A stretch of 50,069 nt of DNA. It comes from Cyanophora paradoxa CCMP329 (taxonomy: Eukaryota > Plantae > Glaucophyta). The notes below the pieces were generated by a model. It made no database searches. It had not been told where the DNA came from and saw only the letters and a list, made by a program, of their open reading frames with translations. This document shows, piece by piece, positions 5,245 to 34,431 of the stretch (the first letter of the stretch is position 1; every line of letters begins with the position of its first letter). The DNA is taken from contig QPMI01000172.1 of the NCBI GenBank assembly GCA_004431415.1, positions 1 to 50,069 of the forward strand. Direction: 5' to 3'. Made by a program: the position numbers and the translations under genes.

Positions 5245-5480
5245 TGACCTGCCAGGCTGGTGCGCATCCCGCCAGTCCGCATGCGCACGCAAATAAGAAG
5301 AATTCCGTCCCAGCTGCAGATTTCAGGAATACGAAGCATTCATCAAACCGATTAGCTAGCTCTAGGATAGAGCTCGCGCGCAGTATCGCTTGAAGATGGG
5401 CTGCTATAGATAGCTTTTACAGAAAAAATAAAAAAAAGCAAAAAAAACGTAAAAAAGTGAACCGCTGCACCGAAACCAAC

Positions 5481-5695
5481 ATTACCTCGGCGAGTTTACC
5501 CCGACGTCTTTACCTCGCCAACTTTACCTCGGCGAGTTTACACCGACGTCTTTACCCCGCTTTTCACAACTTTACCACCCTGACTTTACCCCGGCGACTT
5601 TACCCTGGTGACTTTACAGTGGTGTAACGCAAACAGCACAACTTTACCACACCCTAAGTTTACCATATGGTAAACTTAATTTCTGGCTCCCAGTG
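5481..5695. repeat. Subterminal TTTACC repeat array, 24-bp perfect palindrome and CAGTG terminus (copy 1)
   Basis: About 12 copies of (C/G)TTTAC(C); palindrome TAAGTTTACCATATGGTAAACTTA at 5655-5678; CAGTG at 5691-5695. Confidence 0.85.
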
Positions 5696-6872: not shown

Positions 6873-7627
6873 TCAGGCGACGATCATCGAGGAGAGCTCG
6901 AGGGGCTGGGGCGAGCCGCCGGCGCTCGAAGGGGCGGGGGCCGGCGGGGCGCCGGACCAGACGTAGAAGACGGGGGTGCGGGCGAAGCCGTTGAAGTTGG
7001 TGGAGGCGCAGCTCATGGCGTGGCCCATGGCGGGGAAGAGGAGCCAGTCGCCGACCTCCATCCTGGGGAGGCGCGCGTGCCGCAAGATGCAGTCCAGCGA
7101 GTCGCACGTCTGCCCGTACACCGTCACGTTGTAGAGGGCCTCGCCGGGGGCCGGCGCCCGCAGCGGCAGGGCCACGATCTGCGGCGGCGCCGCCCCCTGC
7201 GTCGTCGCGGGGTTGAAGGAGCCGTACACGCCCTCGTTCACGTAGAAGAGGAAGTCCGGCACGGGCGAGGGCGCCCCGTGCTGCTGCTGCTGCTGCTGAG
7301 GGTGCGGGTGCGGGTGCGATTGCGGGTCGGCGTGTGCCGAGGCGGCCGACGGCCCTGCGCCGCTCCCAAGGGACGAGAGGGCGGAGGAGGCGGAGGAGGA
7401 GGGGGTCACGAGGGGCGGGGGGGAGGACTCGGGGCCTGCCGCGCGGGGGTACAGGTCCGTCAGAGCCGAGTCGCGCGCGGGCGAGGTCGGAGGCGGCGGG
7501 GCGCACTCGAGTCGGCGGGGCGGCTGTGCTGCACGTCGCGGCGCGCGATGACGTTGACCGCCAACGTCTGGATCTCCTGCGCGCGACAAGGAGGGGCGCG
7601 GCTCGGGTCAGCCGTGCGGCCGGCAGC

Positions 7628-7665
<38 letters not shown>

Positions 7666-9099: not shown

Positions 9100-9215
9100 T
9101 TGCTCGACGAAGAGGCTTAGTTGCGAATACCTTGTACCCCCACAGGCAAGAACTTCGTCGGCCTTCCTCGCTGTTCTGTGGTCGGCGGGAGGTGGCGGAC
9201 CTCGAGCGGTTCGAG

Positions 9216-11530: not shown

Positions 11531-11549
11531 AGAATTCAAATGATGAGGA

Positions 11550-12482
11550 CAGTCAAGACAGTCAGAATTCGAATGATGAGGACATGAAGAAGCTTCAGGC
11601 TGAGCAGGCCGAGCAGCAATCTCGGCATCGACAGAACGAGGCTGATGAGGCAGAGATCGCGCGCCGATTTGAAGCCGATTCTTCGCTCCATCGCGTTCAG
11701 AATCCCGAGTTCGAAAGAGCGACTGCCGATTACGGTCGCTTCTTCAAGGACGCTAATGTCCGTCTCCTGGTTCGTTCATTCTTTAACTCTCCTCTCCTTG
11801 TGTCGCTGCTGCAACATCATGATGCAGGAGGAGACTGCAATGGACGTGACACTTCAGCAAGGATCTTCATCACGTTCAGAGCCACTGGACCTGCTGGTCA
11901 CACTTGCCACAGGGAAATCAGCTGCAGCAGTGGCATCAAATATTCCTGATGGGGATGAGTCCGGCTTGTCGTCGGACGAGGAGGAGATGACTACGCACCG
12001 CAGCCAGGTTGGTGGAGATGAGCTTGATTAATGACCTGCCAGGCTGGTGCGCATCCCGCCAGTCCGCATGCGCACGCAAATAAGAAGAATTCCGTCCCAG
12101 CTGCAGATTTCAGGAATACGAAGCATTCATCAAACCGATTAGCTAGCTCTAGGATAGAGCTCGCGCGCAGTATCGCTTGAAGATGGGCTGCTATAGATAG
12201 CTTTTACAGAAAAAATAAAAAAAAGCAAAAAAAACGTAAAAAAGTGAACCGCTGCACCGAAACCAACATTACCTCGGCGAGTTTACCCCGACGTCTTTAC
12301 CTCGCCAACTTTACCTCGGCGAGTTTACACCGACGTCTTTACCCCGCTTTTCACAACTTTACCACCCTGACTTTACCCCGGCGACTTTACCCTGGTGACT
12401 TTACAGTGGTGTAACGCAAACAGCACAACTTTACCACACCCTAAGTTTACCATATGGTAAACTTAATTTCTGGCTCCCAGTG
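11550..12482. mobile_element. Duplicated right end of the CACTA-like element (3' part of ORF2, subterminal repeats, CAGTG end)
   Basis: Copy of 4765-5695; CAGTG at 12478-12482. Confidence 0.7.
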
Positions 12483-12686
12483 TACTGTAGAATGCAAAAC
12501 TTTATTAGTCTAAAATATCGGGGTTTTGGCATCTTTATTACGGTAATAATATTACCTAGTATATATTTAATATTTATGACTTGGCGCTGAGAGCTTTATT
12601 AGCGGCCTTCATTGCAATTGGGGGGTGCCCCCCGCCCCCGGCCCCCCTCCGCGAGCCACGCATGAGGAGGCTATAGCTATGCCCCG

Positions 12687-12717
<31 letters not shown>

Positions 12718-13668
12718 GCCCCTCCTCCAAACCCCGCCCCCCCCCCCCCCCCCCCCCCCGCATGCACACACACAACGCCCAAGTACCCTGCAATGTGCAC
12801 GCGCACAAGTATACGTACCCCCCTTGCCGCAGTGCACCACCGCACGCGCGCGGCCGGCGCCTGCACTTAAGCTTGCTGCACTTGCACAGGGCCGGGCGCA
12901 GTCTGCCAGCTGCAGCTAGCGCTGCATGCGCAGCCGTGACGTCGACGTCGACGTGGGGTCCGGTGGGGAGGCCTATAGCTAGCCGCTAGTGGCTATGTAT
13001 AGACAGTATAGGTCGACGTCGGCGTGCACCATTATTTTCAATTGGCCATGGAACTTCGGAAGGCCGCGGCCGGATCCCGGAGCTCGCGAGTCGCGAGCGT
13101 GCAGGCCTAGGCCTGCATCATGGGCCTCATGGCATGCGAGTCGTGATGCGACGGCCGCGGGCTATACATACATATTTTGACGGGGCTAGCGCTCAGGGCT
13201 AATTATAAGTGGCAATTTTGGTAAGTGGCAACTTTGGTATGCTTATGTATCGACATCATGAAACACGCATTCCTGCTGCGCGAGCTAGCTACTAGGCTAG
13301 CGCTAGGGGCTTCATCTCACTGCTTCACAGAAACACACGTGCACGGGCCGACTGGAGACCCCACGGACCTGCAGCCAGCGAAAGGGTACATGTACATGCT
13401 CAGCTCAGACTAATCTTCCGTTCCTGGAAAGTGTTCCTAAATACGTAAAGCCTCGTCGGTACCCAAGTCTAGACATGATTCCTGGGAAGTATTCTGAAAG
13501 AGTTCCCGATACCTACGTCGAATTGATCTCGCTAAGAGCTGCGTCTACATAGACAAAGAGAACGCAGGCCGACGGGGGACCCCAAAGCCTGCCCTCCCTC
13601 CCCAGCTATGACTAGCGCCAAGCCAGACGCTGTAAAGACTGTATACGGGCGCGCGCGGTGCGGGCCGC

Positions 13669-14422
13669 TCAGGCGACGATCATCGAGGAGAGCTCGAGGG
13701 CTGGGGCGAGCCGCCGGCGCTCGAAGGGGCGGGGGCCGGCGGGGCGCCGGACCAGACGTAGAAGACGGGGGTGCGGGCGAAGCCGTTGAAGTTGGTGGAG
13801 GCGCAGCTCATGGCGTGGCCCATGGCGGGGAAGAGGAGCCAGTCGCCGACCTCCATCCTGGGGAGGCGCGCGTGCCGCAAGATGCAGTCCAGCGAGTCGC
13901 ACGTCTGCCCGTACACCGTCACGTTGTAGAGGGCCTCGCCGGGGGCCGGCGCCCGCAGCGGCAGGGCCACGATCTGCGGCGGCGCCGCCCCCTGCGTCGT
14001 CGCGGGGTTGAAGGAGCCGTACACGCCCTCGTTCACGTAGAAGAGGAAGTCCGGCACGGGCGAGGGCGCCCCGTGCTGCTGCTGCTGCTGCTGAGGGTGC
14101 GGGTGCGGGTGCGATTGCGGGTCGGCGTGTGCCGAGGCGGCCGACGGCCCTGCGCCGCTCCCAAGGGACGAGAGGGCGGAGGAGGCGGAGGAGGAGGGGG
14201 TCACGAGGGGCGGGGGGGAGGACTCGGGGCCTGCCGCGCGGGGGTACAGGTCCGTCAGAGCCGAGTCGCGCGCGGGCGAGGTCGGAGGCGGCGGGGCGCA
14301 CTCGAGTCGGCGGGGCGGCTGTGCTGCACGTCGCGGCGCGCGATGACGTTGACCGCCAACGTCTGGATCTCCTGCGCGCGACAAGGAGGGGCGCGGCTCG
14401 GGTCAGCCGTGCGGCCGGCAGC

Positions 14423-14460
<38 letters not shown>

Positions 14461-15896
14461 AGCGCGGCCGCACCTGGACGAGGAAGCGGCTGGGCTCGGC
14501 GGTCAGGGCGACGCCCTCGGGGACGAGCTCGCCGAGGAGCGGCCCGACGGCGGCGGCGAGCCGCGCGAGGGCTTCTTGGGAGGCCGGCCACGCGGAGCCG
14601 AGGTCCAGCGCGCGGACCTCGTGCCCGTGGCGGGCGGCCGCCGCCAGCGCGTGGCGCGAGAGCCGCAGGCACTCCGCGAGGTGCTCGGGCGTCCAGGCCC
14701 CGCCGCCCGCCGCCAGGCTCAGGCCCACCACGCGCAGCCCGGCGTCCCTCGCAGCCTTCAGGAGCCCCTCCGCGTCTGCGGCGGCGACGGCGGCGGTGAG
14801 CGCGCGCGGCGCGGGAGACGCGACGCTGCCCGCCGCCGGACGCACCGGCGAACGTCGACACGCGCCGCGTGCTGTTCGCCTCGGCATTCGGCTCGCATCG
14901 GAGCTGGAGCACGAGCTCGACGTCCTTGAGCTGCTGGAAGTTCGAAAGGTCTGCCGGCGCAGCGCGTCAGCGCTCGCAAACGAGCGGAGCGACAGGCAAG
15001 CTGACCCGTGTCGGCGTTGAAGGCAAACTTTCTAACTCCGAGAGCCTGCCCGCGTGCCGGCCGGTCAGCGAGCTGTCAGGAGTCTGGCTCTGGGCAGGCG
15101 CTGACGTGTGCGGCCTGGATGTGGCCCCGCGGTACTTGCGGGTTTGCGCAGACCACGGAGTGCTGGTCCGGATCGAATGAGTTCAGCTTGAGCACGTGCG
15201 CGAGGAGTTTCGCCTGCGATGCGCGGTCGGTGGCGGGGCGGCCGGCGGCACATCAAACGCATCACCTCGTTAAGGCCGTCGACCGCGAATACGAAATCAA
15301 GCCAGTGGAGCACATTCAGAATCGCCGCATCGAGGTTACACCTCAAACCTGATCGGCGGGGCAAGTCATAATCAAATGCGCGGGCACGCGCGTTACGCGT
15401 GTGAGCATCCGCGGCCTCGCGGGGGCCGCCGATGGCACTGACCGAAGACGGGTCTTGTCCGAGGAAAAAGCTCCCGCCAGGACGCCGCTCGCCGGGCGAG
15501 CGCGCCCAGATCCAGCACGTAGAACGCATCTTCCAGCCCGCTCACGATCTTGCTGTTCACGACATCCTCTATCTGCATCAGGAGAGCGTTAGTTCGAAAA
15601 CCCAAGCGCGAGAGCGCATGATGGAGTGCGACAACCAAGTTCCCGCGTGGACACTCGTTTGACCGTGAGGTGGCATCTAGGCCGGCCGGGGACGCGACGG
15701 AATAACATGCAGAGCATTTGACACTCTAAATCTTGGCGAGGCCCGCCAATGACGGGCCGGGGGACGGGGGCGTCGGGGGCATGGCGAAGATGCGTACCTT
15801 GGCGTTGGCGGGGAGCGCCTCCACGTCAACGTGCCGCTGGAGCTCGTTGAAGATCGCATCCTCTTCGCAGCGCGTCCGGCTGTTCCCAGCGCCCAT
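13669..15896 (-). CDS. Ornithine decarboxylase-like protein, catalytically degenerate, copy 2
   Basis: Same sequence as 6873-9099. A 1-nt difference in a G run near 13700 alters the last codons, probably a consensus error in one copy. Confidence 0.8.
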
Positions 15897-16012
15897 TTGC
15901 TCGACGAAGAGGCTTAGTTGCGAATACCTTGTACCCCCACAGGCAAGAACTTCGTCGGCCTTCCTCGCTGTTCTGTGGTCGGCGGGAGGTGGCGGACCTC
16001 GAGCGGTTCGAG

Positions 16013-19000
16013 ATGCGCTGGGCGACTTGGCCGTCCGCCGCGGCAGGGGTGTTCGTCGTCGCCTTCCTCGCCGGTCCGAGCGCCGCAACCCGCGCATATC
16101 CGAGGCCGAAGCCGTTAGAGTGGGCTTCTGACACATCCGCACCGCCGTTGCGCAGTCTCGTGCGCTCAAGAGGTCGGAGACGCGGCCGCTCCTCCTGCCG
16201 ATGCCACACCCGCAGTGAACACCACTGCTCTCTACTACGAGGCTCTCGTGAGTCTCTTTCCTCGAATCACCGCTCGCCTCATCACCGCCTGCCCAGGATG
16301 CCCTGGAAGCGGAGTCCGAGGCGGAGCAGGCGCGTGGCCTGAAGAAGATGGTGGAGGCGTCGGCTCTCGGCAGCCTCGATGCGCTCGCCAAGCTCCTCGA
16401 CGTGTACAGGGTCCGCTGCGGTCGCACGCCGGAACCGACGGCGTAGCGCGCTGACGGCGCGCAGTTCAAGACGGAGCTCCCCGCGCCGTCGATATCCACG
16501 CTGCGGGCGCAGCTGTTCGCCCTGGACGAGCACACGCTCGACGCTGACCTCCTGTCCGCCCCGCCGCGCGCCGCCCGCCGCGCGCCGCGCCGCCGCGCCA
16601 ACCGTCCCTTAGGTACGACCGCGGCATGCTCCTGGCGACGGGGGCGGGCCTGGAGGAGGGCGGGGATCGCTCGACGGAGGAGGCGCAGGCGGACCTGCGG
16701 AAGGGGATCGACCTGATCGCGCGGGCGGCCGAGGCGGGCGAGAAGCGCGCCGTGCAGGCGATGGCGTACGCGCGGCTGACGGGGCGCGACGGCCTGCCCA
16801 AGAGCTGCCCGGAGGCCCTCGAGGACTACATGGAGAGCGCGGCGCACGGCATCCGCGCCACCGAGAACCGCGCCGGTTCCGCCGCCGCCCGCCCGCCCGC
16901 CTGCCCGCCCGCCCCGGCCCCTCGCCCTGATCGCCCTCGGGGCGCAGGGCCGCTGTACCCGCACTACACGGTGCTGCGGGAGGAGGACGAGACGGGGGTG
17001 GACGTGCTCGCGGAGGAGAAGCAGATCCTCGAGATCGACGAGCACGACGCCGTCATGGGCGACCCCGACGCCCAGGCGCGCGGGCGAACGCTCCCCCGCC
17101 CCCTTCCGTGCCCCGCTGACGCGGAGCAGGTGCGGATGGGCCAGCGGCACCTGACGGGTGAGGCGGGCGTGGGGCGGGACCCCGGCGCCGCCATGCAGAA
17201 CTTCCGGCAGGCTGCCGACGCGGGGGACCCGCACGGTGCCTGCCCCCCAGGCCCCTCCTGCAGGGCGGTGGACGGCCGGCTCACCCGCGGCGGGGCCGGG
17301 GCGCAGGCATGTTCTTCCTTGGGTACCTCCGCCTCTCCGAGATCGTCAACGCCGGCATCGTGCGCCTCGGCCGTACCCCCGCCCCTCCCCCGCCCCGCCT
17401 CTCACCGTACCCCCCCGCAGCGGAGCGGGAACGGGAGCCGCTCGCCCGAGGACGAGGCGGAGCTGAAGGAGGCGCACTCGCTCCTCGAGCGCGCCTCCGC
17501 CGCCGGCGTGCGCACGCGCATGCGCGGCGCGGGCCGCATCAGCGCCCTGCTCAGCGGTGCCGGCAGGTTGTGGAGGCGACGGCGGCGCTGGGGCAGGCCT
17601 ACATCCACTCCTGGGGCGTCCAGGCCAACGTTACGAAGGCGCGAGAGAGCGAGCGGATGTAGAAGAAGACCCGCGACCGCATGCTGAGCCTCCCGCAGGG
17701 CCTGGAGCTGCTGCGGGCGGCGGCGCGGCAGGGGGCGGTGGAGGCGACCTTCCAGCTCGGCTCCCTCCTCCTCGACGGCGTCCTCGAGTTCACCATGGAC
17801 GCCGCCTCCGGCTCCACCCGCGTCCGCCCCGCCCCGCCCCGCCCCGCCCCGCCCCGCTCCGCGCAGCTTTGTTGGAACGCTGGGCCCCCGCAGGGGATCA
17901 TGGTGCGTGACGAGGCGCGGGCGCTGCGGTACCTGCGGGCGGCGTACGCGCGGGGGCACTGGCGCGCCGGCTACCCGCTTGCCGTCGTGCACGCCGAGGG
18001 CCGCGCCAACGCCTCCCGCTCCTGCCCCCGGTCCGTCGCGCCCCGTCGCCTCGGCCTCGGCCTGGCCTTAGCCGCCTGGGCAGGGCGGCGCGGTTCGCGA
18101 AGGCGGTGGCGGAGGACAACGGGGACGTGGCGGAGCTGACCGACGCTGCCCACCGCGTCCGCCCGCCCCGCCCCGCCCCGCCCTGCGCGTGTGTCCGGCC
18201 CTCCCTGAGGCGGCCCCGGGCGGGCCGGCAGGCGTGGCGGGAGCTGCGGGACGCGGGGCGGGCCCTCGCTCTCTACGCCGAGGCCGCCCTCCTCGGCTCC
18301 GAGGTCGCCCAGGTGCCCCGGCCCTGCCTCCTCCTGGGCCGGCCCGGCCCGGCCCGGCTCGGCTCGAGCGGGCGCGCCCGCCGCGCAGGTCAACGCGGCG
18401 CACCTGATCGTGACCGAGGCCGTCCCCGCCAGCCCCGCCAGGCCCGCCCCGCCCCGCCCGCCTAGATGGGCAGCCTCGGCTGAGCTGACGGGCGGCGCGC
18501 AGGGGATGGCAGGCCCTCGACATGCTGGGGCGCGCCGCCGAGCAGGCGAGAGAGCGCGCGCGCGCGTCCGGACCAGCATAGACGCCAGGCTCGATTCGCC
18601 GCTGAGCGCGGGGCGCGCGCGCGCAGGGCGCGGCGGACGCGATGCTGGCCCTGGGCGACCTCTACTACTACGGCCGCTCCGGCCCCGTGCGCCCGCTCGC
18701 CCTCCGCTTCCGGCGCCCGTCCCCCGCCTCTTACGCTTATATAATTATCGTATTCCGTGCCCCGCAGGTGGCGGCGCCGGGGGGGCGGGACGAGGCGCTC
18801 GCGGCGGACTGGTACGAGCGCGCGGCGGCGCTGGCGGACGTCAAGCGTGACGACTTCCGCGCCGACATCGACTGGGTGCGCCCGCCGCTGCCTGGCGGCT
18901 GCCCGGCCGGCCGGTCGGGCCGAGCGGCTGAGGGGCGGCAGGTCTACTCGAACCGGGAGAGCCTGAACGAGAGCGTGTCGGAGGTGGCGACGTACCGGGT

Positions 19001-20545: not shown

Positions 20546-20877
20546 CGCGGGCTCCCGCCTCGAATCCGCCAGAATTTGTGTAGCTCCTAGGCAGTGTAGA
20601 CGAAGGGCGAGGACCGTCGGACGAGCCCGCTTCCGATGCGCCGCGGAGCGAGCCACCGGCACTGCAGGATTCGCTGCACCCGAGAGCGACTCGGCGTATT
20701 CGGGGAACGGGGCGCGGCCGCGGGCACCATTGGTAGCGCTAGCGAATGACCTATAGCTAGGCCTAGGATACAGCTCGCGATCGTCGGAGCGATGCCTTTC
20801 CAACGTAGACCCAGATAATCCTAATCACATGCATGATTGAGAAGCAACTGCAGATTATTCCAATTAATATTATAATT

Positions 20878-20966
20878 TTTTTTGGTGAATTACCGGCCAC
20901 AGTCTCTAGACACCAGCACTGCGGGGGCTGCCCAGGGGGCATAAAGACAAAAAAGCAAAATAACGA
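20878..20966 (-). mobile_element. Short copy sharing the 3' end and poly(A) of the SINE at 47987-48193
   Basis: TTTTTTGGTGAATTACCGGCCACAG(T/C)CTCTAG...CCAGCACTG(C/T)GGGGGC is shared with 47987-48047; flanked by the 12-bp direct repeat AATATTATAATT (20866-20877 and 20967-20978). Confidence 0.65.
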
Positions 20967-21129
20967 AATATTATAATTAACGCCACACTCACGCACACAC
21001 ACAAATTCTGCAGCTATCGAAATCTAGATCTGCAGATAGGAAGGAACTCCAGGAAAGGAAAAGAAGAGAAGCCAGGGCAACTGCAGAACCGCGCAGCACC
21101 TATAGCTAGCTATAGGCTAGGCCTAGACA

Positions 21130-24100
21130 TCACTGCAAAGCCGAATTCGAATTCTCGAGCTCCCGTTTGGCGTCTTCCATGACCTTGCGCACTAGCAGCG
21201 TCTTCTCATGCTGAGGCCCGTAGGCCCGCTCGAGGATGGCCAGAGAATCCTGCCGCAGCAATGATAATTAGATGCGCCACGCTTGGCTGCACAGAGAATT
21301 TCCAACGCGCCTCGAAAAGAGCGAACGCTTCGGAGTGCGCTCTCAATTTGAAGAGCACGTCCGCGAGGCCGCCCATGGCCCACGCCACGTCCGGGTGCTC
21401 CGGCCCCAGCAGTTTCTTCTTGATCCGCAGCGCCTCCTGCAAAGGAAAGCCCAGAGATTAGCGTCCTCTCAAGCGAAAGCGACGGCGCGCGCGGCCGGCC
21501 CCGCGCCTCGAACAAGGGCCGCGCTGCCGCCTGGTCGCCCAGGTCGTCGACAAGGTTGGCCAGGTAGTGCGTGTCCGCCGCCACGTCGGCGTGCTCCGGC
21601 CCCAGCGCCTTCCGCCGGATTCGCAGCGCTTCCTGCGTCGATGAGGAGTTGCATCAGAACCGAAGAGGACACCAGCTGCAGCGCTAGCTACGCGTCAGTA
21701 TTAACGTACCTCGTACAGGGGACGAGCCGAAGCGCGGTCCCCCTGGTTGTCGAGCAGGACCGCCAGGCTCCGCGCTGCCCTGCCGACGTCCGCGTGGTCC
21801 GGGCCCAGCGCCTTCCTGGACACCCGCAGCGACTCCTGCGAGAGTCGGGATCGGAATCGGGCAGAGTTGCCAGCAGTTCCCCGAGCCGCAGAGGTCAAGA
21901 TCAGGTGGACCTCGTACATGGTCCGCGCTGCGGCGAGATCGCCGAGATCCTCCAGCAGAGGTCCTCCCAGGCCAAGCATTGCCTCCGCAACTTCCGTGTG
22001 CTCCGGCCCCAGCGCCTTCTTCAACAGCTCCAGCGCCTCCTGCGCGGGCAAAAACAAATAACTAAACGTGGCCAGCTGCAGTGCGTGGCTCACGGAAATT
22101 TAAGGGGCGCGAGCTGCACCTCGAACATCGGCCGCGCCGCAGCGACGTCGTTCAAAATGTAGAGCAGGCTGACCAGGTTCAACATCTTTCTTGCGAAGCT
22201 CGGGTGCGCATGCTCCGGCCCCAGCGCCTTCCTGAAAACCCGCAGCGCCTCCTGCAAAGGGCGAAATCAAAAAGCTTAAGATAACGAAGAGAGACTCTAT
22301 GAGAAAAGAGGGGGGTCCCTAGGCCCGAACCTCAAGCACGGGCCGCGCCGCTGCGTATTCTTTCTGGTCCTGCAGCAAGTTGCCCAGATGCTGCAGCGTT
22401 GTCGCGACGTCCAAGTGGTCCGGTCCCAGCGCCGTCTTGTACACCCGCAGCGCTTCCTGCGCGAATGCGTATTCGTACGGCGGGATCGAAACCTTGTAGA
22501 CCAAAGAAGTGAAAAGAAAAAGGGTCCCCGAACCTCGTACATGGGCCGCGCCGCCGCGTAGTCCGCCTGCTCCTGCAGCACGGTGCCCAGACTCCGCAGC
22601 GTTGTCGCGACATCCTTGTGCTCTGCTCCCAGGGCCCTTTTGTACACTCGCAGCGCCTCCTGCGAGAGCCGGCATCGTCACGGGGCCGGATGGATGCGGA
22701 GCCTAGAGACTCGGGGTTGCACCTCAAACACGGGGCGCGCTCCCGCGCAGTCGCCCAGGTCCGCGAGCAGGTTTGCTAGGAGATGTGCTGTCTTTGCGAC
22801 GTCCAAGTGGTCCGGCCCCAGCGCCGTCTTGTACACCCGCAGCGCCTCCTGCACATGCGGGATCGGAATTGGGGGTCTGTGGAGACACAGGTAGTGCACC
22901 TCGTATGTGGGACGCGCCGCTGCGTAGTCTCTTTGGGCCTCCAGCAGAGCGCCCAGACTCCGCAAAGTCATGGCGACTTCTACGCGCTCCGGCCCCAGCG
23001 CCTTCTTGAACACCCGCAGCGCCTCCTGCGCCGGATCAAAATCGTGACTCGGCGGACCGGACCCCGGGCCCGGAGATCTAGAAGAAGGAGCGCACCTCGT
23101 ACATGGCCCGTGCCGCTGGCAAGTCTCCCTGGGCCCTCCGAACGGTTGCGAGGTTGTGAAGCGCCCTCGCGACGTCCGAGTGCTCCGGGCCCCGCGCCTT
23201 TGTGTATACTTTGAGCGCCTCCTGCGCGGAGGGGCCGCTCGAGGCATCGAAAGACAAACCAAAGCAAAAGGGCGCGCATTGCGATCGCACCTCATACATG
23301 GCCCGCGCTGCGCCGAATTCGCCCTGGTCCTTCAATAAGGCCCCCAGGTCAAGCATCGTCGCCGCAACTTCGGTGTGCTCCGGCCCCAGCGTACTCCTCT
23401 GCAGCCGCAGCGCCTCCTGTGGAGAATACGTCAGAATGTAGACGACGCACACGCGTACGCACGTCTGCATAAAGAAGAGTGTGCGCTGCACCTCGTACAT
23501 GGCCCGAGCCGCCGCGGAGTCACCCTGTTTGCCTATCGCACCAGCCAGGTGTTGCATTGCTGTCGCCACGTCTGCATGCTCCGGCCCATGCGCTTTCTTC
23601 AACAGTTCAAGCGCCTCCTACGCACGCAAAACAAATCAATTTATAGTTGGCCAGTGTGCGGCTCACGGGAAGGCCTAGGGTGCGAGCTGAACCTCGAACA
23701 TCGGCCGCGCCGCAGCGACGTCGTTTAGAATGCGGAGCAGCGCCGCCAGGGTCATCATTGTTTTCGCGTAGTCCGGGTGCTCCGGCCCCAGCGTCTTCTT
23801 TAACACCCGCAACGCCTCCTGCGAAGGACGCGATCGGATACAAAACGAACAGATCGTATAGAGAAAAGACAAGGTCTTCGCGAACCTCGTACATGGGCCG
23901 CGCCGCTGCGTATTCTTCCTGCTCATGCAGCAAGGCGCCCAGATTCTGCAGCGTGATCGCGACATCTTCGTGCTCTGGCCCCAGCGCCTTCCTGAAAACG
24001 CGCAGCGCCTCCTGCAAGAATCGGAATCTAAATTCGGGCCAAGCCGGAATGCAGAGGGGCACTCACCTCGTACATGGAACGTGAAGCTGCGAAATCTCCC

Positions 24101-27100
24101 TGGGCCTTGCACACGTTGGCCAGGTTACGCATCGCCCACGCAACGTCCACGTGCTCTGGACCCCGTGCTTTCGTGTATATCTGAAGCGATTCCTGCGCGC
24201 AGAATCCACGGCAGTCATTGACAGACAAAAATCGAAAGGGCGCGCATTTCACCTCGTACATGGACCGCGCTGAGGCGAGATCGCCCTGGTCCTTCATGAG
24301 GGCCCCCAGTTTACGTAGCGCCAGCGCCGTGCCTGGGTGCTCGGACCCCAGTGCTTTCCTCTGCAGCCGCAGCGCCTCCTGCGGAAGATACTAGTAGGTT
24401 GCACGCGGAACCTCGCGAGATGGTGCAAGCTAGAGTAATTAGGCAAGTTTATTACAGCGCGCGCGTGCTGCACCTCAGACATGGTCCGAGCTGCCGCGGG
24501 ATCGCCCTGTTCGTGAATCACGGAAGCCAGGCTCTGCATCAACTTCGCCACGTCTGGGTGCTCCGGCCCTAGCGCCTTCTTTAAAATCTCCAGCGCCTCC
24601 TACTCGGGCGAAATGAGAACGGGGCCAGTGCGCAATGCGCGGCTCACGGTACGGGCGCGATCACGAGCTGTACCTCATACATTGACCGGACGCGCGCCCC
24701 GGCAGACTTGTTTGAAGCGCGGAGCAGCCCGGCCAGGTTCATCGTTGTCCTCGCGTAGTTCGGGTGCTGCGGTCCCACCGTCTTCTTGTACACCCGGAGC
24801 GCCTCCTGCAAGGACAGCGCTAGCCTTAAATTTTGGGGGCTGAAGATGTAATTTATAGCTGAGAGATCTAGACGAGGTACGCGGCGCACCTCATACAACT
24901 GTTGGGCCGCGGCATAGTCCTTCTGGCCCTCGAGCAGGCCGGCCAGGCCGTCCATCGTGTGCGCCACGTACGGGTGTTCCGGCCCCAGCGCCTTCTTGCG
25001 CAGCTGCAGCGCTTCCTGCGACGAGCGTGCCAGGGCTTAGGGTCCGGCGCAAGGCTGCAGCTGGCCATATTGTGTACATGCCGGCGCGAACTGTACCTCG
25101 TACATCCTCCGAGCCGTCGTGTCGTCGCCCTCTTCTTCAAGCACAGCGGCCAGGCTGTGCATCGCCATCGCGACGCCCGGGTGCTCCGGCCCCAGCGCTT
25201 TCTTGCGCAGCCTCAGCGCTTCCTGCGAGAGACGCGGATCGAATTCGGAAGAATGTCAATTGCAAAGCCCTAGGACTGAGAGAGGGAGCTCGCTCAAATA
25301 TACATTCTTCAAAGCACCTCGTACATTGGCCGCGCAAGCGCGAGGTGGCCCTCCTCCTTCAGCAGGTTGGCAAGATTGTACACGATCGTCGAAACGTCCG
25401 GGTGCTCGGGCCCCAGCGTTTTCTTGTAGATCTGTAGCGATTCCTGCGGAGAGCAGAACATGCATTTGATCTGAACGTCAACCTCGCGGGTCATGAGCAT
25501 GTGGCGCGGGGCACCTCCCACATGTTCCGCGCCGCCGCGAAGTCGCGCTGCTCCGCCATCATGGCCGCAAGGCTGTGCATCGTGCTCCCGACGACCGGAT
25601 GCTCCGGGCCGAGAGCACTCCTGAGGAGCCGCAGGGCTTCCTGCACCGGGGGCTGGGAGCTCAGCCTCGAGGCCGAGGCCGTGCACGGGTGAACCCGGGC
25701 CGCGGGGAAAGCCGCACTTCGCACAAGGGCCGCGCCTCCGCGGAGCAGCCCCGGTCCTGCAGCAGGATGGCCAAGCTCCGCATCGTCGTAGCCACGCGGG
25801 GGTGCTCCAGTCCGAGCGTTTCCTTGAACAATCGAAGCGCTTCCTGCGATCGCGAGCGAGTTAACGTTTAGAGCGAAATTCGAGTTATAATTAGAGGAAC
25901 ATCGAGTAAGGATACGATTTTGATTATTTACCTTGACGAACGGAATGCCTTCGCTGGCTCGTCCCATTAGACCGAGCAAGCTGCCGGCCCTCTGCAGGTC
26001 GTGCGGGTCGGATTCCTCTTCAGCTGTCCCCGCCGCATCGCTGATCCCTAGACGGAGCGCCTTCGCGTAGCGCTCTGCAGCCTCGCCGGACCGCCCGCTC
26101 GCAAGCCAGAGCCCCGTCAGTTCGTACTCGTCCAGGCGCTCGAGGATGTCGGCGTCGCAGAGAATCTGTGCAAGAGGCTCGGCGAAGGCGGGCCCTGCCC
26201 GCGCCAACGCCCAGGGCGCCTCGTCCGCCCGCCGCTGCGAGCCGGGCTGAGAGGCGAAGAACTCTCCCAGTCGCGCGTGGACGGCGGCCCGGAGCTCGGC
26301 GGACTGCTGGCCGGCCGGCGCCAGGCCCGACTCCAGCTCCGCCGCCTCGGCCGTGCAGCGGTGGAAGAAGGCGTACGGGCCGTCCCGGCAGACGACGAGC
26401 CCGAGGAAGTCGTGCCAGAGGAGGCTCCACTCGACCTCCGTCGGCCCGCTGGCGGCGCCCACGCCGACGAGGGCCCTGAGCTCGGCCTCCGCCATTCCGT
26501 GACGCGAGCACACGATCGCCGACGCCACGTCCCGCACGAGGGTCTGCCCGTGGCGCGAGGCGAGCCGGCGCAGGACGAGGCGGAAGAGGTCCCGCGGCCC
26601 TTCCCCGCAGCCGATGAACGCGTCGATGTCAGAGTCGAGCTTCGCGTGGACGGAGACGTTCGAGAGCTCGTCGAGGAGGACAGTGAGGAAGAGCGCGTTG
26701 CGGCACTGATCTGCCTGCACGATTCGCTCGAGCTGCGCTTTGGACAGACAGCGTCCTTGGTCGCGGAGCCTCCCTTCGACCAGCGTCCGACGCCGGGCCT
26801 CGTCGAGCGGAGCGATCGCGAGCGCCGTGTGGGCTCTCGCCACTGCAGCATCGAGGGCCGGGCCTGCGACCCGCAATCGTCCTCAGCAAATTCAAATCAA
26901 AGAGCCCGACGGCTCGGTTTTCGGACAAGATTGAAACCGCACCGCGCAGGCTCGAGACGAGAATGCGGAGACGGGGTCCGGCGGCTGGCGGAAGCCAGGC
27001 GAGGGAGTGCACGGCGGGGTCGCCCCGGAGCTGGTCGAGGCCGTCCAGGACGAGGACGACGCGGGCGGGGAAGCTGGAGGAGCCGGCGGCAAGCGTCTCG

Positions 27101-29285
27101 CTCAGCCGACCTGCCACCTCGGCGTCCGTGCCGTGCCAGTCTCGAGACGCAGAGCCGCCATCGGAGAGATCGAGTCCGAGCCGGCTGCCGATCTCCTCGT
27201 CCAGACGCCTGCCGGGACCTGCGTCAGGGAAAGGGAGCGTGGCGCGCGCAGGGAACGCGGGCGAACCGGGCGATGGACGAGAGCAGGGAGCTGCTCTGGG
27301 ACCCGCCGATGAAGTGCAGGATCGTGAGGTCGCCCGGGTGTGCGCCAGACCACTCCTTCGCCCAGTTGGCCAGGAGAGCTGCGTGCAGGAGGACACATCG
27401 TCAGCGGAGTGCGCCCACGTTGCGATTGGTCGGCGACGGGCAGCGGATCCGGACCGCTCTTGCCGCAGCCGCCCTCGCCGTGGAGGACGAGGATCTCGGG
27501 GCCCGAGGCCGCCGCGTAGGCGCTCAGAGCCTCCATGTCCTCCGCGTCGCGCACGAAGACGCGCTGCCGCGACGCCGCGAACGCCTCGTGCTGGGCCCTC
27601 TCCGCATCCAGCCAGGGGCGGTTCCTCTCGACGGGGTAGTCCTGCTCCAGCATCTGCGCGGCGGCCAGCTGCAGGTCAGATCGTAGGATTGAGAGCGCAT
27701 CACAGGGGCCAAGGCCTCGCCCCGCCCACGCGCGAGCGCACGGCTTTGAGGGCGTCGCGCAGGTCGAGGGCGAGCCGCTGGGGCTCATTGTACTCGGCGA
27801 CGGGCAGGCGCGCGGCCCGCACCTCGGCCTTCAGCTCCTCCAGGCGCCGCTCGGCATAGGGGCCCTCCCCTCTGACTCCGTCCGAGAGGCGAGCGGCTTC
27901 CGTGAGGGCCGAGCCGGCAACGTAGAACAGGCTCCTGCAGCGCATGGCCTGGAGGCGGCTCAGGTTGCGCCGGGCCGGGCAAGGGCGCGGTCGAGGGCGT
28001 CGGGTCGACACACCTCGAGGCGCGACGGGAGGGGGCTCGCAATTGCTCCAGGGCGCACTTTGCTGCCAAGCACGCCGGCGCGAATCTCTACCCCCGGCCC
28101 GTCGATCAACATGGGCGGCGCCCCCTCGCGATCGTGGGGCCCGGCCCCGGCCGGCAGTCCGCGCGCACCGATCTCGGTAATGCTGCGGTCCTCCCAGTTG
28201 GGCACCCAGGGGAACTCTTTCGCGGCGCGCTCCAGGTTCCTGTACCAGCCATGCCAGCCGGGCGTCAACCGGATCACGATGAGGCCTCCAGCTGCAGAGA
28301 TCTAGATCTAGGAGACAGGGGGCGAAAGGGGCGCACAGGCGAAAGCGGGCGTCGCCCTCGTCATCCTCTGAGCCGCCAGAACGCAGGTGCCAGCCGTAGC
28401 GAGTCTGCGACGGAAAGCTCGAGAGAGGATACGTATACGGGAATGGGGCGCGCGTGCACGTGCGCAGGCAGATACAGCACCTTGAGCAGGCCGACGAAGT
28501 GCGTGCTGCGCTCAACCTCCCTTAAGCACAGGAGAACGACATCGCCAGCCTTGCATGCCTCGTCATTGATGCCCCACCTGCGGCCAGCCGAAGGCATGCG
28601 TATACGCGTGAGCAAAGTGAAAGAGCCATGGCCAAGCCGATGGCAAGATCTAAAGAATGCGGGCCTGAGGTCGACGCAGTGAAAGAAAAGCCCGCGCTCC
28701 GCGCACATCGCCTTGATCGTCGGGTTCACGAAGTTGCGAATGGCGTCTCGCTCCGCCTCCATGTCCTCTGCGGCGCACTTTCAGGTGGGCCCGGCGCGCG
28801 CCGCGGGCCGGCGCGGCGCCGGAGCGGCCGCAAGCATGCGCATGCGCGCACAGGCCTAGGCCCTAGGGTTTGCACGCACGAAATGTCGAGGAGACGAAGA
28901 CGCGCACTTCGCGCGACCTGCGCCCGCGGCCGGCCGCCGAGGCCGCGGATCCCGCGGCCGATCGCGAAGGCGCCGGCGCCGGTGGCTGTGGAGCTGCGGC
29001 CGCGGACGAGGCGTCCAGCCGGCGCAGCCACGCGGCCGCGGTCCGCGGCTTCTTAGCTGGCGGGCATGACCTGTCCAACGGGACGCCGTGTATGGTTGCA
29101 ATTGGCTCGAGCTCAGGTTGCTCGAGGTTCAAGCTTAAGGCATCTTCCGTCGACGTACGCGTTGCGACGTTGAGCCCATGGTCAGCTGCAGGAATTGAGG
29201 CCCGCGGCCGCGAGCTTGACGTCGACGGCCCGGCCGCGGCCGCGGCCGCGGTGCCGGCCGGCGCCGCGGCGCCCTCCGTCGTCAT
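21130..29285 (-). CDS. DUF4062 + NACHT/STAND NTPase + TPR-repeat protein (NPHP3/TTC41/TEP1-like architecture, NLR-like)
   Basis: DUF4062 motifs 'VRVFVSSTF|EDMEAERDAI', 'VDLR|WGI', 'FVGLLK|TRYGW', 'SITEI|EI'. Walker A 'LVLHGEGGCGKS' (~27490-27455); Walker B 'VVLVLDGLDQL' (~27060-27030); 'RNALFLTVLLDEL'; 'YAFFH'. Then 23 kinesin-light-chain-type 42-aa TPRs 'EALR...KALGPEHPDVA...LA.LL..QGD.AAAR.MYE'; stop at 21130-21132. Confidence 0.88.
21311..25843 (-). repeat. Array of 23 single-TPR exons (mostly 126 nt, phase 0-0) separated by ~50-95-nt introns
   Basis: Each unit runs AG|GA(G/A) ... GA(G/A)|GT or GC. Examples: exons 21311-21436, 21507-21632, 21710-21835, 23291-23416, 24067-24192 and 25318-25443 are 126 nt each. 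Confidence 0.92.
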
Positions 29286-29974: not shown

Positions 29975-32900
29975 ATGAAGTTCGGAAAGGTGCCCCGACA
30001 CATTCGAGCGACGCATTTTAACCCAATGCGAGCATGCGCTAAGCACGAACTCGGCAGACACTCCAGGCGTTCGATCCTGAGTGGTTTCCGCACGCGATCG
30101 ACTACAAGAAGCTCAAGAAGCGGCTGAAAGCGATCCTCGAGGCTCAGCATGGTGCGCTGCCGGCGCTCCGGGCGTGCTCCCCGCCCGCGCTCGGGCCGAC
30201 CTCGACCGCAGCGAGCCGAGACGTGACGGAGGAGGAACGGACGTTCCAGGAGAACATCACGAAGGAGATCGACAAGGTCTCCTCGTGGATCCGGCAGCAG
30301 GATGGCGAGCTCCGCCGGCGCGCCGAGTCGCTCTCCCGCTTGCCCGCAGAGACAGTGGTGGGCGCCCGCGATGCGATCCGCCCGACCGCCCGCGCCGTCT
30401 CTGAGGGCGGCCGCTCAGGCGCAGCGCAAGCAGCTCGCGAAGGACGCAGGCGAGTTCGCGTGCGCGCTGGTGCGGCTGGAGCAGTTCGAGCGGATCAACG
30501 GGACGGCCCTGCACAAGATCCTGAAGAAGCACGACAAGAAGTACGGCGCGGTGCCCCTCCTGACGACCTTCGCTGCCCTCCACAACATCTACGCCCCCAA
30601 GTACGGGCCTTCGCTCCGCGCCCTCAGCGGTCCGCCCGCCCGCCCGCCCCGTCCCGTCCTCGCTTGCCCAGCGTCTCACATTCCGGCGGCAGACGCGCAC
30701 GCGCGGGCGCGGGGCGAGCAGGCGGCCGGCGGGGCCGGCGGCGAGGCGGCGGCGCGCGAGGCGACGGCCGCCGTGCCGGGGCCCGACGGGGAGGCTGGCC
30801 TCCGGTACTGGGTCCGCCCCGAGCGCGTCTCCGAGCTCGTCTCCCTCAAGGTACCCCCCTCCTCTTCCCCCCCTTCTTCCTCTTCTTCGGCTGAGGGAGG
30901 GGCGTGCGCAGCTGCTGCCGGCGATGGCGGCGGGGCCGGAGATCGGCGGGGAGGCCGGCACGGGCTTCCTCGTGTCCTCCGTCTACCTTGACAGCGAGTC
31001 CTTCGACGGCTACCACGCCCGCATGCGCTGCCAGGCCCGCCCGCCCGCCCTCCCTCCCTCCCTCCCCTCTCCTGTGGCTCGGGCGTCCGGCGAGGCGGGG
31101 GCCTGCGCAGGGCTCGGCCTTGCGCATCCGCTGGTTCGGCGGGCGCCGCCCCGACCTCGTCTACGTTGAGCGGTGCGCAGGACGGCCGCACCGGCCCGCC
31201 CCGGCCCGCGACCCGGCGCCGGCGGCCTAACGCTGGCCGCAGGCTGGCCTTCGGCGGCCCCCGGCGGCTGGAGCGCGTCGCCCTCCGCGAAGCCGACGTA
31301 CCCGCCTTCCTGAAGGCGCGCCGCACCCGTACCCTCCCTGCCGCCCTCCGCGCCCCGCCAGACGCGCGCGCGCGTAGGGCGAGTTCAAGGGCAAGCCGGC
31401 GGAGGGCGGCGAGGCGGCGGCGGCGCTGCTGGCGGAGATCCAGAAGGCCGTCGCGAAGCAGAAGCTGGCCCCCGTGCTCCGCACGCAGGTCCGCCCCGCC
31501 GCCCGCACGGGACCTCTGACCAGCTGACGTAACCCCCTCCGATCTGACCACCACCACCTTCTCATCCAGAGCCGGCGGCTGGTGCTGGAGGATTCCCGCG
31601 GGGCGCGCGTCTCGATCGACTCGGACGTCTGCTTCATCCGCGAGGGCCGCGGCGCCGATCCGGCCTCGGGCGAGGCTCGCCCCCCCCCCCCCCCCCCCCC
31701 CCCCTCCCCCCTCGCCGCGCCCTCACCCCCGCCCCAGGCGGCGTGCGCGTGGCACCGGGGGTACGTGCCGCCCGACGCCGTGCCCAACTCGGACTGCCTC
31801 CGCTTCGAGTACGCTACCCTCGACGTCCGGTGCTCCCTTTCCGTACCCGTACCCCCCTCCCCCCCTCTCCTGAGCTTCTCCTTCAGGGGCCCCCGCCCGG
31901 CGTGGGTGGACGAGGTCGCCGGGGCCGACGGCATCGTCATGGAGGTCGCCCACTTCTCCAAGGCCCTCCTCGGCACCGCCCTCGCGTACCCGGGGCGCCT
32001 CCAGGCCCTCCCCTGGTACCGCGCCGTCCCCGGGGGCGAGGCGGACGGCGAGCCGCTGCCCCGCGGGGCCGCCAAGCAGGCCCTCAAGGGCGCCGGCACG
32101 GGCCCCGTGCCCACGTACGCCGGCCCCCTGCTGGTCACCCCCAGGGAGGTCTCCGCCGCCTCGGCCGCCGGCGCCGGCGGCGGCGAGGCGCGCACGCCGC
32201 CTTCGGCCGCGAGCGCCTCGCCCGGGCCTGCGCCTCTCCCGCCCAGCACCCCGAAGTACACCGCCCCGCCGCCCGTCTGCCGCCGCATCACCCCTCCAAG
32301 GCCGCGGCCGCGGCTGCCGCGCCGGCCGCCGTGGCGCCGGCGCCGGCCCCGGCGCGCATCGACGAGATCGCCGTGGCGCCGCCCGCGGCGGTCTCCTCGG
32401 CCCGGGGCAGCGACGCCGATGAGCGCACGCCGCTGCTCGGCCGCCCGGCCTCCTCCGCCTCGGCCGCCGCCGCCGACGGCAGCCTCGGCGCCTACGCCCG
32501 CCGCACGGCCGAGGTGCCCTTCGCCCGACTCAGCCCGTCTCGTCGTCCCCGCCTCACCCTCGGGCAGGTCCTCTCGCAGGCGGTGCGGCGCGGGGCGGAG
32601 CTGGGCGCCGACTGGTGGCAGAAGGGCCTCATCATGTTCGGCGCCGCTGAGAAGAAGCAGCGCATCCAGGTGCGCGCAGAGCGGAGCTGGGAGAAGGAGG
32701 GGAGGAACAGCTGGACCCTGAGCTCGCTCGCGGCGCCCCCGCAGGTGCCGGTGAAGGTGGAGCCGAAGACCTTCTTCGCGAACGAGCGCACCTTCATGAA
32801 CTGGCTCGCCTTCTCCGTCGTCCTCATGTCCCTCGGCGTCGCCCTCATCAGGCGCGCCCTTCTTCTCCTGCCCCCCGCACCTTCCTTCCCTTCGCTCCTT

Positions 32901-34396
32901 CGGCTCTGACCCCAGCGCTCTTCCCGCGCCGCAGCCTCAAGGGCTCGGGCCTGGGCCGCGCCTCGGTCTACCGCCCCGAGTTCTCCTCGTCGCCCGTCCG
33001 CAGGGCCTCCGCCGCCGGCTTCGCCTTCCTCGGCGCCTCCATGGTGCCCCTCTCTTGGCTTAGCCTCGGCCTTGGCGGCCTGCGCGAAACCCCAGCTTAG
33101 CCTCGCCTCGCCCCGCCTTGCCTTGCCTCGCCCTGGCCGGGAGCTGAGGCGAGCGCCAGGTCTCGGTGGTCTACGCGGTGGGCATGTACCACTACCGAAC
33201 CACCAACATCCGCCGCAAGATCGCCGGTCCGCCCGCCCGCCCGCCCGCCCGCTCGTCCCCAGCGCGGCGCGGCCCGGCTGACGGCTCCGGCGGGCAGCGA
33301 ACTACGGGGACAAGATCGGCCCCAACTTCCTCGCCGCCGTCCTCATCGGCCTCGCCGGTCCTCTTCCCCCCCTCTTCCCCCCCCCCCCCTCCCTCTCACC
33401 CTTCGTTCGCAGGGACGAACATCTACCTCTACGCGTCGCAGCTGAACCCCCCCTGCGCCGACTTCTCCTCCCTCACCGGCGGCGCCGGTGCGCGCAACCC
33501 CATACCCCCGTCGTCCTTCCCCCCTGACACACCGTACCCCCCCTCGCCAGACTTCTCGGCGGTGGGCGTGCACGGGGTACCGGGGCGCCCGGAGGCGCTC
33601 CTCGCGGTGGGCCAGGGCCTCGCCGAGCTCCGCCTCGACTCCCTCCGCACCCGCTCGTGCGTCCGAAACAAAACGACGTACCCCCTTGCTTTGCTCTCCC
33701 CCTCTGACGTACGCACGCGCGCACGTACCCGGGCAGCTTCGCGGTGCCGTCGTGCGTGGACGCGGCCTGGCTGGCCGGGGACGCGCCCCCCGGGGCCGAG
33801 GCGCTGGTGTACCTGCTGAGGCAGTACCCCCCCTCCATCGTGGAGTTCGACACTGCGGCGATGCGCGCCCTGCGCTCGTTCGACCTCCCCATCGAGCCCC
33901 GGGACGTCCCCTTCTGGAGCCTCTCGGCCATCACGTACCTCCCCGCCGCCGCCCTCAACGGCCCCGCCGCCGGCCGCGGCGCGAACCCGGCCGCCGGCCA
34001 CTTCCTCGTGGCGACCTCGGGCGACGGCCGCGTCTACCGCGTGGACCTCCCGCTCCAGGCCGCCAAGCCCGGCGCCGCCGCCTCGGTCCGGGGCTTCTCC
34101 GTCCCCGCGCCCGGGATGGCGGACCTGCACGGCCTGCACTGGCACGCCGGCCTCGGCCGCCTCTACATCCTCGCCGGCTCCTCCCTCATGGAGGCCGACC
34201 CCACCTCGCTCGCCCCCTCCCGCGAGTGGCCCCTCCTCTTCCGGTACCCCCGCCCGCCCCCCGCCCACGCTGTAGAGGGGCCGGGCTTCCTTGCTGACGC
34301 CCCTGTACCCCAGGCGCTTCCGGGGCATGTGGATCGACGAGAGCGGCGAGAACGCGTTCCTCACGACGGACCGCAAGGTCCGCACCCCCCTTGTCA

Positions 34397-34431
<35 letters not shown>

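Follow-up and report, generated by a model that had tools for sequence, protein, structure and literature searches.

In the brown alga Ectocarpus, a multigene family of proposed immune receptors joins an NB-ARC NTPase to an arm of tetratricopeptide repeats (TPRs) whose 42-residue units, each a 34-residue TPR plus linker, are encoded by one 126-nt phase-0 exon each; evidence that these exons are shuffled includes inactivated TPR exons within introns and exons on the other strand (PMC3341825). The present work concerns a gene of comparable build in the glaucophyte Cyanophora paradoxa CCMP329, located on the minus strand of a 50,069-nt stretch of DNA (contig QPMI01000172.1, positions 1 to 50,069; this whole stretch is referred to below as the window). 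Its predicted product combines DUF4062 and NACHT-type regions with an arm of 23 TPR periods, each on its own exon. An earlier note, made from the sequence alone, had interpreted this arm as an actively diversifiable recognition system. The analysis reported here indicates instead that the gene is probably an intact member of a Cyanophora family of NLR-like STAND proteins, in which the one-period exons are a fossil of the growth of the arm and the array is now fixed.

The likeness to Ectocarpus, already pointed out in the earlier note, holds well: in both cases the TPR arm that follows the STAND NTPase is laid out in consecutive 126-nt, 42-codon, phase-0 exons (PMC3341825), the comparison covering exon length, phase and unit size. 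The chassis is different, as that note had also proposed. The NTPase is NACHT/NPHP3-like, with no NB-ARC domain detected by Pfam in the exons of the window or in the paralogues; a DUF4062 domain, of the TIR-like NADase type, forms the N-terminus; the gene comes from a glaucophyte instead of a brown alga; and the footprints of shuffling seen in Ectocarpus are missing from the 50 kb analysed (see below). The layout itself is published for another lineage, and what differs here is the NTPase clade, the effector domain and the host lineage.

DUF4062 is described as a TIR-like NADase; in eukaryotes it occurs mostly in NLR-like proteins, and in Archaeplastida its prevalence is low (bioRxiv 10.64898/2026.05.01.722283, 10.64898/2026.09.04.749371). 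Among bacterial DUF4062-STAND/NACHT-TPR proteins, PsAvs2 (DUF4062-STAND-TPR) is an antiphage protein which senses a phage protein and depletes NAD+, and which requires a conserved Glu (bioRxiv 10.64898/2026.09.04.749371). PsAvs2 and the bacterial relative P0153 found in this work share with the Cyanophora gene the order of DUF4062, NTPase, helical region and TPR_10/12 repeats, as well as the Glu motif SxTExE. They differ in being encoded by an uninterrupted open reading frame (locus L001 for P0153) with fewer repeats, compared to 35 exons and 23 repeats here, and the function of the algal protein is a predicted one. Animal NPHP3, TTC41, NWD1, NWD2 and TEP1 also have an N-terminal DUF4062 beside a NACHT ATPase and a helical domain; models of NPHP3 sub-domains match the Cyanophora gene, and NPHP3 and TTC41 have KLC-type TPRs as well. 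These animal genes are single-copy and show no lineage expansion, unlike the Cyanophora-only clade of at least 30 members to which the gene described here belongs. In fungi, NLRs with highly conserved internal repeats combine a STAND NTPase with TPR, ANK or WD repeats, and gain, loss and reshuffling of units are thought to create new specificities; the units are near-identical and lie within one exon, and hence recombine readily. The Cyanophora units, by contrast, have introns between them, share 53-83% of their DNA sequence and show no detectable sign of recent exchange.

Structure of the TPR exon array

The window consists of GC-rich eukaryotic DNA. The gene and the features of its 3' part, as delimited by splice sites and open reading frames, are as follows.

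29285-21130, minus strand: whole gene model, 35 exons and ~1,860 codons (11 upstream exons, 23 TPR exons and the terminal exon)
21311..25843, minus strand: array of 23 single-period TPR exons of 42-44 codons each, all phase 0 (splice-site and open reading frame scan)
21133..21249, minus strand: terminal exon, 117 nt, 39 codons, half-repeat C-terminal cap (TPR_12, E 9.8e-4)
20981..21132, minus strand: stop codon (21132-21130) and 3' untranslated region of at least ~150 nt, RNA-like contigs of runs X15 and X17 reaching 20981 and 20991

The scan found TPR exons of 126 nt in 20 of 23 cases, of 129 nt in one (22039-21911) and of 132 nt in two (24805-24674 and 22251-22120). A hidden Markov model (HMM) derived from the array matched exactly 23 units in six frames of the whole window, with E values of 1e-19 to 1e-24. 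Both results bear out the count and the lengths given in the earlier note, whose limits (21130-25931) agree with the stop codon at 21130 and with the end of the upstream exon at 25932. All 23 exons are free of stop codons and are bounded, at the same point of the repeat, by AG upstream and by GT or GC downstream. The boundary formula AG|GAG...GAG|GT proposed previously is correct as to phase 0 and constant position, but is not universal: 15 exons open with GAG and 8 with GAA, 22 close with GAG and 1 with GAA, and two introns of the arm have GC donors (after 21507 and after 21311). Two acceptors read TAG. The 22 introns between TPR exons measure 51-95 nt, and their GC content is 58%, compared to 65% in the exons. 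The pattern encoding LGPEH occurs 22 times in the array, against 2.45 occurrences expected by chance in the entire window. Tandem Repeats Finder did not detect the array, since its copies have diverged too far and its introns are dissimilar; a repeat search and the HMM do detect it.

The repeats are of the KLC type, as illustrated by the TPR exon at 24011-23886, which scores 42.1 bits with TPR_12 (cut-off 30.1) and 32.5 bits with TPR_10 (cut-off 27.5). The register of the exons is of interest here. Pfam TPR_1 places residue 18 of the exon at TPR position 1, and TPR_10 wraps round the exon, so that each exon is one 42-residue period and not one structural TPR: it runs from the last part of one helix B through an 8-residue linker and helix A into the first part of the following helix B, and the introns interrupt helix B between TPR positions 25 and 26. 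The earlier description of one TPR per exon is therefore accurate for the repeat period, though the intron cuts inside a helix. Since the introns of the arm are all phase 0 and at the same point of the repeat, removal or addition of any single TPR exon would be predicted to preserve both frame and periodicity.

Transcription, splicing and integrity of the locus

No sequencing run was recorded as RNA. Runs X15-X18 were called RNA-like on the grounds that they hold 0.40-0.48 of the sampled words, as exon-only sequence should. Contigs of X15, X17 and X19 (RNA-like, three studies) and of the DNA run X14 were aligned to positions 20950-26900. The RNA-like contigs carry the predicted joints, and at least 13 of the 24 introns of the arm are among the joints listed, including both GC-AG introns of the arm (21250-21310 and 21437-21506), the former being spliced out in contigs of both X15 and X17. 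One contig of 1,286 nt contains part of upstream exon 11 followed by TPR exons 1-6 (five of 126 nt and the 132-nt exon 6), all with exactly the predicted lengths, and contigs of 788-798 nt extend from TPR exon 20 to TPR exon 23 and on through the terminal exon into about 150 nt of 3' untranslated region. These spliced contigs match the locus at 99% or more. No exon skipping was seen, the RNA-like contigs of all three studies including every exon that they cover.

At the DNA level, 13 samples contain 0.98-1.00 of the sampled words; the labels of the DNA runs bear the dates 2012, 2019 and 2024. In X14, the one run of these 13 that was aligned, contigs tile the whole stretch without other letters or indels, and no difference was listed. 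The locus is a real, transcribed gene, very probably of Cyanophora paradoxa to judge by the paralogue clade and the run labels, and splicing of its array appears today to be constitutive, giving one long TPR superhelix.

Two apparent irregularities were rejected. A joint from 22038 to 23692, which would skip eight exons, has a short side of 23 letters only, and the normal junction from 22038 to 22120 fits equally well; the ambiguity arises because exons 19 and 11 have identical 33-nt 3' ends, and the contig ends at a repeated 31-mer. Shared 31-mers of this kind are also where the contigs of all runs break off within the array. Bumps of about 3x in DNA depth (22542-22740 and 26323-26720), considered as traces of near-identical paralogues, are better explained by words shared within the array and by a stretch of exon 11 that is 90-97% conserved in the group of P0001, the nearest public paralogue.

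A separate observation concerns the region just downstream of the coding sequence. The palindrome CTAGGCCTAG occurs twice (20757-20766 and 21117-21126; 0.05 expected), with one copy on either side of an AT-rich stretch of about 360 nt that lies just past the stop codon and within which the RNA-like contigs end (20981-20991). An X14 DNA contig diverges exactly at 21117, at one of the copies. The bracketed stretch may represent a small element inserted in the 3' untranslated region.

Upstream exons encoding DUF4062, NACHT and helical regions

The upstream part of the gene was modelled by tblastn guided by P0001 and by direct reading of splice sites. The 11 exons total 2,550 nt (850 codons), with mixed intron phases.

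29285-28880, minus strand: exon 1, predicted; start codon 29285-29283, low-complexity N-terminus and first DUF4062 strand VFVSSTF; ends in phase 1
28767-28665, minus strand: exon 2, DUF4062 (homology to P0001 and splice sites, as for exons 3 to 6)
28577-28481, minus strand: exon 3, DUF4062
28404-28337, minus strand: exon 4, DUF4062
28239-28169, minus strand: exon 5, DUF4062
28087-28014, minus strand: exon 6, DUF4062
27948-27742, minus strand: exon 7, linker and NACHT-type core (homology and splice sites, as for exons 8 to 10)
27668-27455, minus strand: exon 8, Walker A GEGGCGKS
27378-27267, minus strand: exon 9, NACHT-type core
27208-26943, minus strand: exon 10, Walker B VLVLDGLDQL
26863-25932, minus strand: exon 11, 932 nt, helical/winged-helix part of the STAND module (NPHP3_hel, E 5.6e-5; HTH_NWD1, 0.022); ends in phase 0

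The DUF4062/NIR region (28014..28767) is divided over five small exons with intron phases 2, 0, 2, 1 and 0, one of the introns splitting the motif S-I-T-E-I-E. The motifs VFVSSTF, DMEAERD, VDLRWGI, RYGW and SITEIE, characteristic of DUF4062, can all be read in exons 1-6. Column alignment shows the motif SxTExE to be near-invariant among relatives from Cyanophora, other eukaryotes and bacteria. The DUF4062 of P0001 matches the crystal structure of the TIR-like domain of TEP1 (11gz_A, E 1.4e-16); the sequence can be mapped onto this structure as far as chain residue 89, and the Glu of SxTExE is a candidate counterpart of E1008 of TEP1. In the NTPase, the Walker A motif GEGGCGKS lies at 27479-27456 and is followed by ALL across an intron, and the Walker B motif VLVLDGLDQL is found in exon 10, as in STAND/NACHT proteins.

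Single exons score below Pfam thresholds because the domains are split over exons. A piece covering 28364-28780 reaches 14.7 with DUF4062 (threshold 24.7), compared to 42.4 bits for P0001; NACHT (PF05729), divided over four exons that were scored unjoined, reaches 14.4 bits (cut-off 26.7), compared to 35.1 bits for P0001, which is 59% identical over the N-terminal half. Matches of single exons to NPHP3_N and AAA_16 are likewise weak. The paralogues pass the thresholds for DUF4062, NACHT and TPR_10/12. Together with the DUF4062 motifs, the NACHT-type P-loop and the C-terminal TPR arm support the earlier assignment to NLR-like STAND proteins built on a DUF4062-NACHT chassis.

RNA-like contigs cover three parts of exon 11 (25931-26120, 26367-26595 and 26667-26864). 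Beyond the loose end of a contig at 26864, 27 of 30 letters agree with those that close exon 10, which fits the predicted junction of exons 10 and 11, although this contig may derive from the transcript of a paralogue. A probable third GC-AG intron is predicted within the DUF4062 region (28578-28664), with a donor reading GCCCGC.

History of the array

The TPR exons are 53-83% identical to each other in DNA sequence (mean 65%), and their similarities are ordered. Exons 6-10 and 11-15 are reciprocal best partners at a constant offset of 5, and the unit found in exons 6 and 11 recurs as a third copy in exon 19. Introns following matching exons retain similarity above that of every shuffle (i8-i13, i6-i19 and i11-i19), and a maximum-likelihood (ML) tree of the exons supports the clades (6,11,19), (7,12), (9,14) and (10,15,17,18). 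The constant offset, the similarity of introns and the supported clades together indicate that the arm grew by tandem duplication of exon-plus-intron units, and, at least once, of a block of five exons measuring about 1 kb. Duplication of this block is old, since dS between the two blocks is about 0.5 (0.51, with omega, the dN/dS ratio, at 0.45).

Traces of more recent activity were sought in several ways. A six-frame HMM search of the 50 kb, introns and plus strand included, revealed no inactivated, reversed or orphan TPR exon and recovered nothing besides the 23 spliced units; the introns, at 51-95 nt, are too short to conceal TPR exons. There was no excess of identical runs indicative of gene conversion once a column-aware null and Bonferroni correction were applied; the low p-values given by a naive shuffle test were rejected, the runs sitting on the conserved LGPEH segment. 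A comparison with 125 TPR units of 31 Cyanophora paralogues revealed no sharing of exons, the best match per unit having 52-74% amino-acid identity, without colinearity. The idea of recombination put forward in the earlier note is thus borne out for the past, in the form of unit and block duplication, but no recent exchange is detectable.

Variable positions and selection

Column analysis of the 23 exons reproduced the contrast, described in the earlier note, between nearly fixed scaffold residues and widely varying columns. The most variable columns include TPR positions 2, 5, 6, 9, 12 and 13, which by sequence register fall on the concave face of the TPR arm. These positions are the concave, ligand-contacting ones and are the most variable in TPRs generally (PMC1261162). 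The pattern may accordingly be taken to mark a binding surface, yet it is not specific to immune receptors, since concave positions vary in all TPR families (PMC1261162).

For the concave positions, chosen in advance, omega was 1.01 (bootstrap range 0.61-1.52), compared to 0.36 for the other columns, as estimated from six independent within-gene duplicate pairs. A first split using variable columns defined by entropy (omega ~1.2) was dropped as circular and replaced by this one. Change on the concave face after duplication is therefore neutral-like, under neither purifying nor demonstrably positive selection. Purifying selection at the variable positions, which the earlier note had named as evidence against its proposal, is not what we observe, and the positive selection that would favour that proposal is not demonstrable either.

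Family and relatives

An exhaustive HMMER search with exon 11 yielded 1,690 relatives, of which the best ~18 were all EukProt proteins of Cyanophora paradoxa, with P0001 at the top (76%). A word-based search with P0001 retrieved about 25 Cyanophora proteins, followed by bacterial and metagenomic DUF4062-NACHT-TPR proteins at 31-37% identity, measured over the N-terminal 700 residues. In a tree of the exon 11 region (81 rows, without animal NPHP3 sequences), the exon of the window falls inside a clade with 29 Cyanophora proteins (SH-aLRT 100), its sister being P0157 (SH-aLRT 91), which is about 70% identical in exon 11. By these sequence comparisons, the gene belongs to a lineage-specific expansion in Cyanophora paradoxa that counts at least 30 paralogues. 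The earlier note had suggested a genome-wide search for such paralogues, and had named one-to-one orthology with a housekeeping gene such as NPHP3 or TTC41 as an outcome that would speak against it; membership in a Cyanophora clade of this size indicates that the gene is not such an orthologue. Repeat units number 0-12 in the EukProt models of the Cyanophora paralogues, compared to 23 in the gene of the window. A further EukProt protein assigned to Cyanophora paradoxa, P0019, is placed by the helical-domain tree with metagenomic and bacterial rows and not in the main Cyanophora clade, and may be a contaminant of the protein set or represent a second lineage.

Outside Cyanophora, the nearest identifiable relatives in these searches are intron-less bacterial DUF4062-NACHT-TPR genes. 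The gene for P0153, whose cluster includes a protein from a Chlorobi metagenome-assembled genome, is a single 3.2-kb open reading frame without introns (L001); rpmH and rnpA lie close to it on its bacterial contig of 130 kb. The hit lists suggest that the family may have originated by horizontal transfer from bacteria. A search with DUF4062 only, however, also yields hemichordate and protist proteins at a distance similar to that of the bacterial ones. The PADLOC 2023 models gave no defence-family match for the family, and a limited literature search found no paper tying Cyanophora to such genes.

Other features of the window

Upstream and downstream of the gene, the window contains further repeated sequences. 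A near-perfect tandem duplication of ~6.8 kb (5000-11900 and 11800-18700), with many 300-nt blocks 100% identical at a spacing of 6,787-6,799, includes an ODC-like gene; either a genuine segmental duplication or an error of assembly may account for it. Each of its copies contains an array of 14-nt period with a TTTACC core (5476-5622 and 12263-12409, repeat family D9). At 2878-3601 lies a tandem array of ~7 copies of a ~100-nt unit, 71-100% identical (families D10 and D11). Poly-C runs of 25-35 bases are found at 5885-5961, 12676-12786, 31670-31705 and 34384-34430, some flanked by the same GGGCCCCTCCTCCAAACCC motif (family D6).

Interpretation

What the analysis shows is how the gene is built, that it is transcribed and spliced, which family it belongs to, how its array was duplicated and that its motifs are retained; we regard an intact NLR-like STAND gene with a fossil, now fixed, array as the probable explanation for these observations. 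The protein would comprise, in order, a DUF4062 domain of the TIR-like NADase type, a NACHT-type NTPase, a helical/winged-helix module, 23 KLC-type TPR periods and a cap. A unit consisting of a 126-nt exon and a short intron placed inside helix B would have been duplicated in tandem many times, and a five-exon block of about 1 kb at least once, after which the copies would have diverged, most rapidly at the positions of the concave face where ligands would bind. From homology to other STAND switches and to bacterial DUF4062-STAND-TPR defence proteins, we infer that the protein senses a ligand, acts as an NADase and has an immune role: binding of a ligand to the concave TPR face may free the switch from autoinhibition, the NACHT module may then oligomerise with ATP, and the clustered N-terminal DUF4062 domains may hydrolyse NAD+, leading to growth arrest, death or signalling.

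Several points weigh against this explanation in whole or in part. The N-terminal exon model is derived from homology and splice consensus, the aligned RNA-like contigs covering only parts of exon 11 in this half of the gene. Logan contigs lose rare variants, so that minor exon-skipping isoforms are possible, and the 13 DNA samples may all be of one strain. None of the Cyanophora proteins retrieved from EukProt (635-2,021 aa) is identical to the product of the gene, the best reaching 59% in the N-terminal half; a gene of ~1,860 codons is therefore probably missing from that set, or mis-modelled or fragmented in it. We know of no pathogen assay for Cyanophora. Purified human NWD1, NWD2 and NPHP3 show no NADase activity, whereas TEP1 is active (bioRxiv 10.64898/2026.05.01.722283, 10.64898/2026.09.04.749371), and the DUF4062 domain of the Cyanophora gene may therefore be inactive or require activation.

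The proposal of the earlier note was that symmetric exons are skipped, duplicated or swapped, by splicing or by somatic or germline recombination, yielding many sensors from one locus. The architecture would lend itself to this, as each of the 24 introns in the arm interrupts the repeat in phase 0 and at one constant point, the array was remodelled in the past by unit and block duplication, repeat number varies widely among paralogues, and the concave positions (omega ~1.0) escape purifying selection. Every record of present activity, however, points the other way: RNA-like contigs from three studies retain each exon that they cover, the single long skip being a 23-letter ambiguity; X14 has no listed differences and the 13 DNA samples hold nearly all the words; the 50 kb contain no pseudo, reversed or orphan TPR exon and the introns are short; the copies have diverged to 53-83% identity, with a block dS of ~0.5; and there are neither significant conversion tracts nor paralogue units matching at more than 74% amino-acid identity or in colinear order. 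An actively diversifiable receptor is thus not supported and seems to us very unlikely; an 'adaptive-like' diversifying system would be important if true, but nothing testable here supports such a reading. Decay or mis-assembly of the locus, as a pseudogene or artefact, might be suspected from the lack of an identical protein in the retrieved EukProt set and from the breaks of all contigs at shared 31-mers within the array. It is largely refuted, and we give it hardly any credence, in view of 35 exons without stop or frameshift whose inferred coding lengths make whole codons, of spliced RNA-like contigs matching at 99% or more, of the contigs of an independent DNA run tiling the stretch without indels, and of purifying selection (omega ~0.36) at scaffold positions.

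A different question is whether the gene, intact and fixed, serves immunity at all. It could encode a non-immune STAND scaffold or regulator, NPHP3-like in a flagellar or ciliary role or else metabolic, with the TPR arm as a fixed platform and a DUF4062 that is silent or serves assembly only. The best named Pfam matches are indeed sub-domains of NPHP3 (NPHP3_hel, TPR_NPHP3 and the NPHP3 N-terminal model), Cyanophora is a flagellate, human NPHP3, NWD1 and NWD2 are inactive as NADases in vitro, and an old, fixed and constitutively spliced array would suit such a platform. Set against this are the presence of at least 30 paralogues with differing repeat numbers, unlike a single-copy housekeeping orthologue, the retention of the catalytic-type Glu motif and other DUF4062 motifs, the surface positions free to vary, and the fact that the nearest relatives outside Cyanophora are bacterial DUF4062-NACHT-TPR proteins, a class which includes antiphage sensors. 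We consider a non-immune role unlikely, while taking it seriously. It is also tempting to speculate that the Cyanophora family as a whole is a germline-diversified innate immune repertoire, in which cassettes gained, lost and diverged between paralogues, and perhaps skipped rarely or under challenge, would retune an NAD+-depleting TPR sensor, convergent with the brown-algal NB-ARC-TPR system and built on a bacterial-type DUF4062-NACHT chassis; this we hold to be a long shot.

The locus illustrates cleanly how a long repeat arm arises when exon-plus-intron units are duplicated in tandem, and it extends the list of eukaryotes with expanded DUF4062-NLR-like families by one lineage of Archaeplastida. 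The build of one repeat per symmetric exon in a STAND-TPR gene, so far described for the NB-ARC-TPR genes of brown algae, is found in a glaucophyte as well, and there on a different chassis, DUF4062 and NACHT, whose nearest identifiable relatives appear to be bacterial defence-type proteins.

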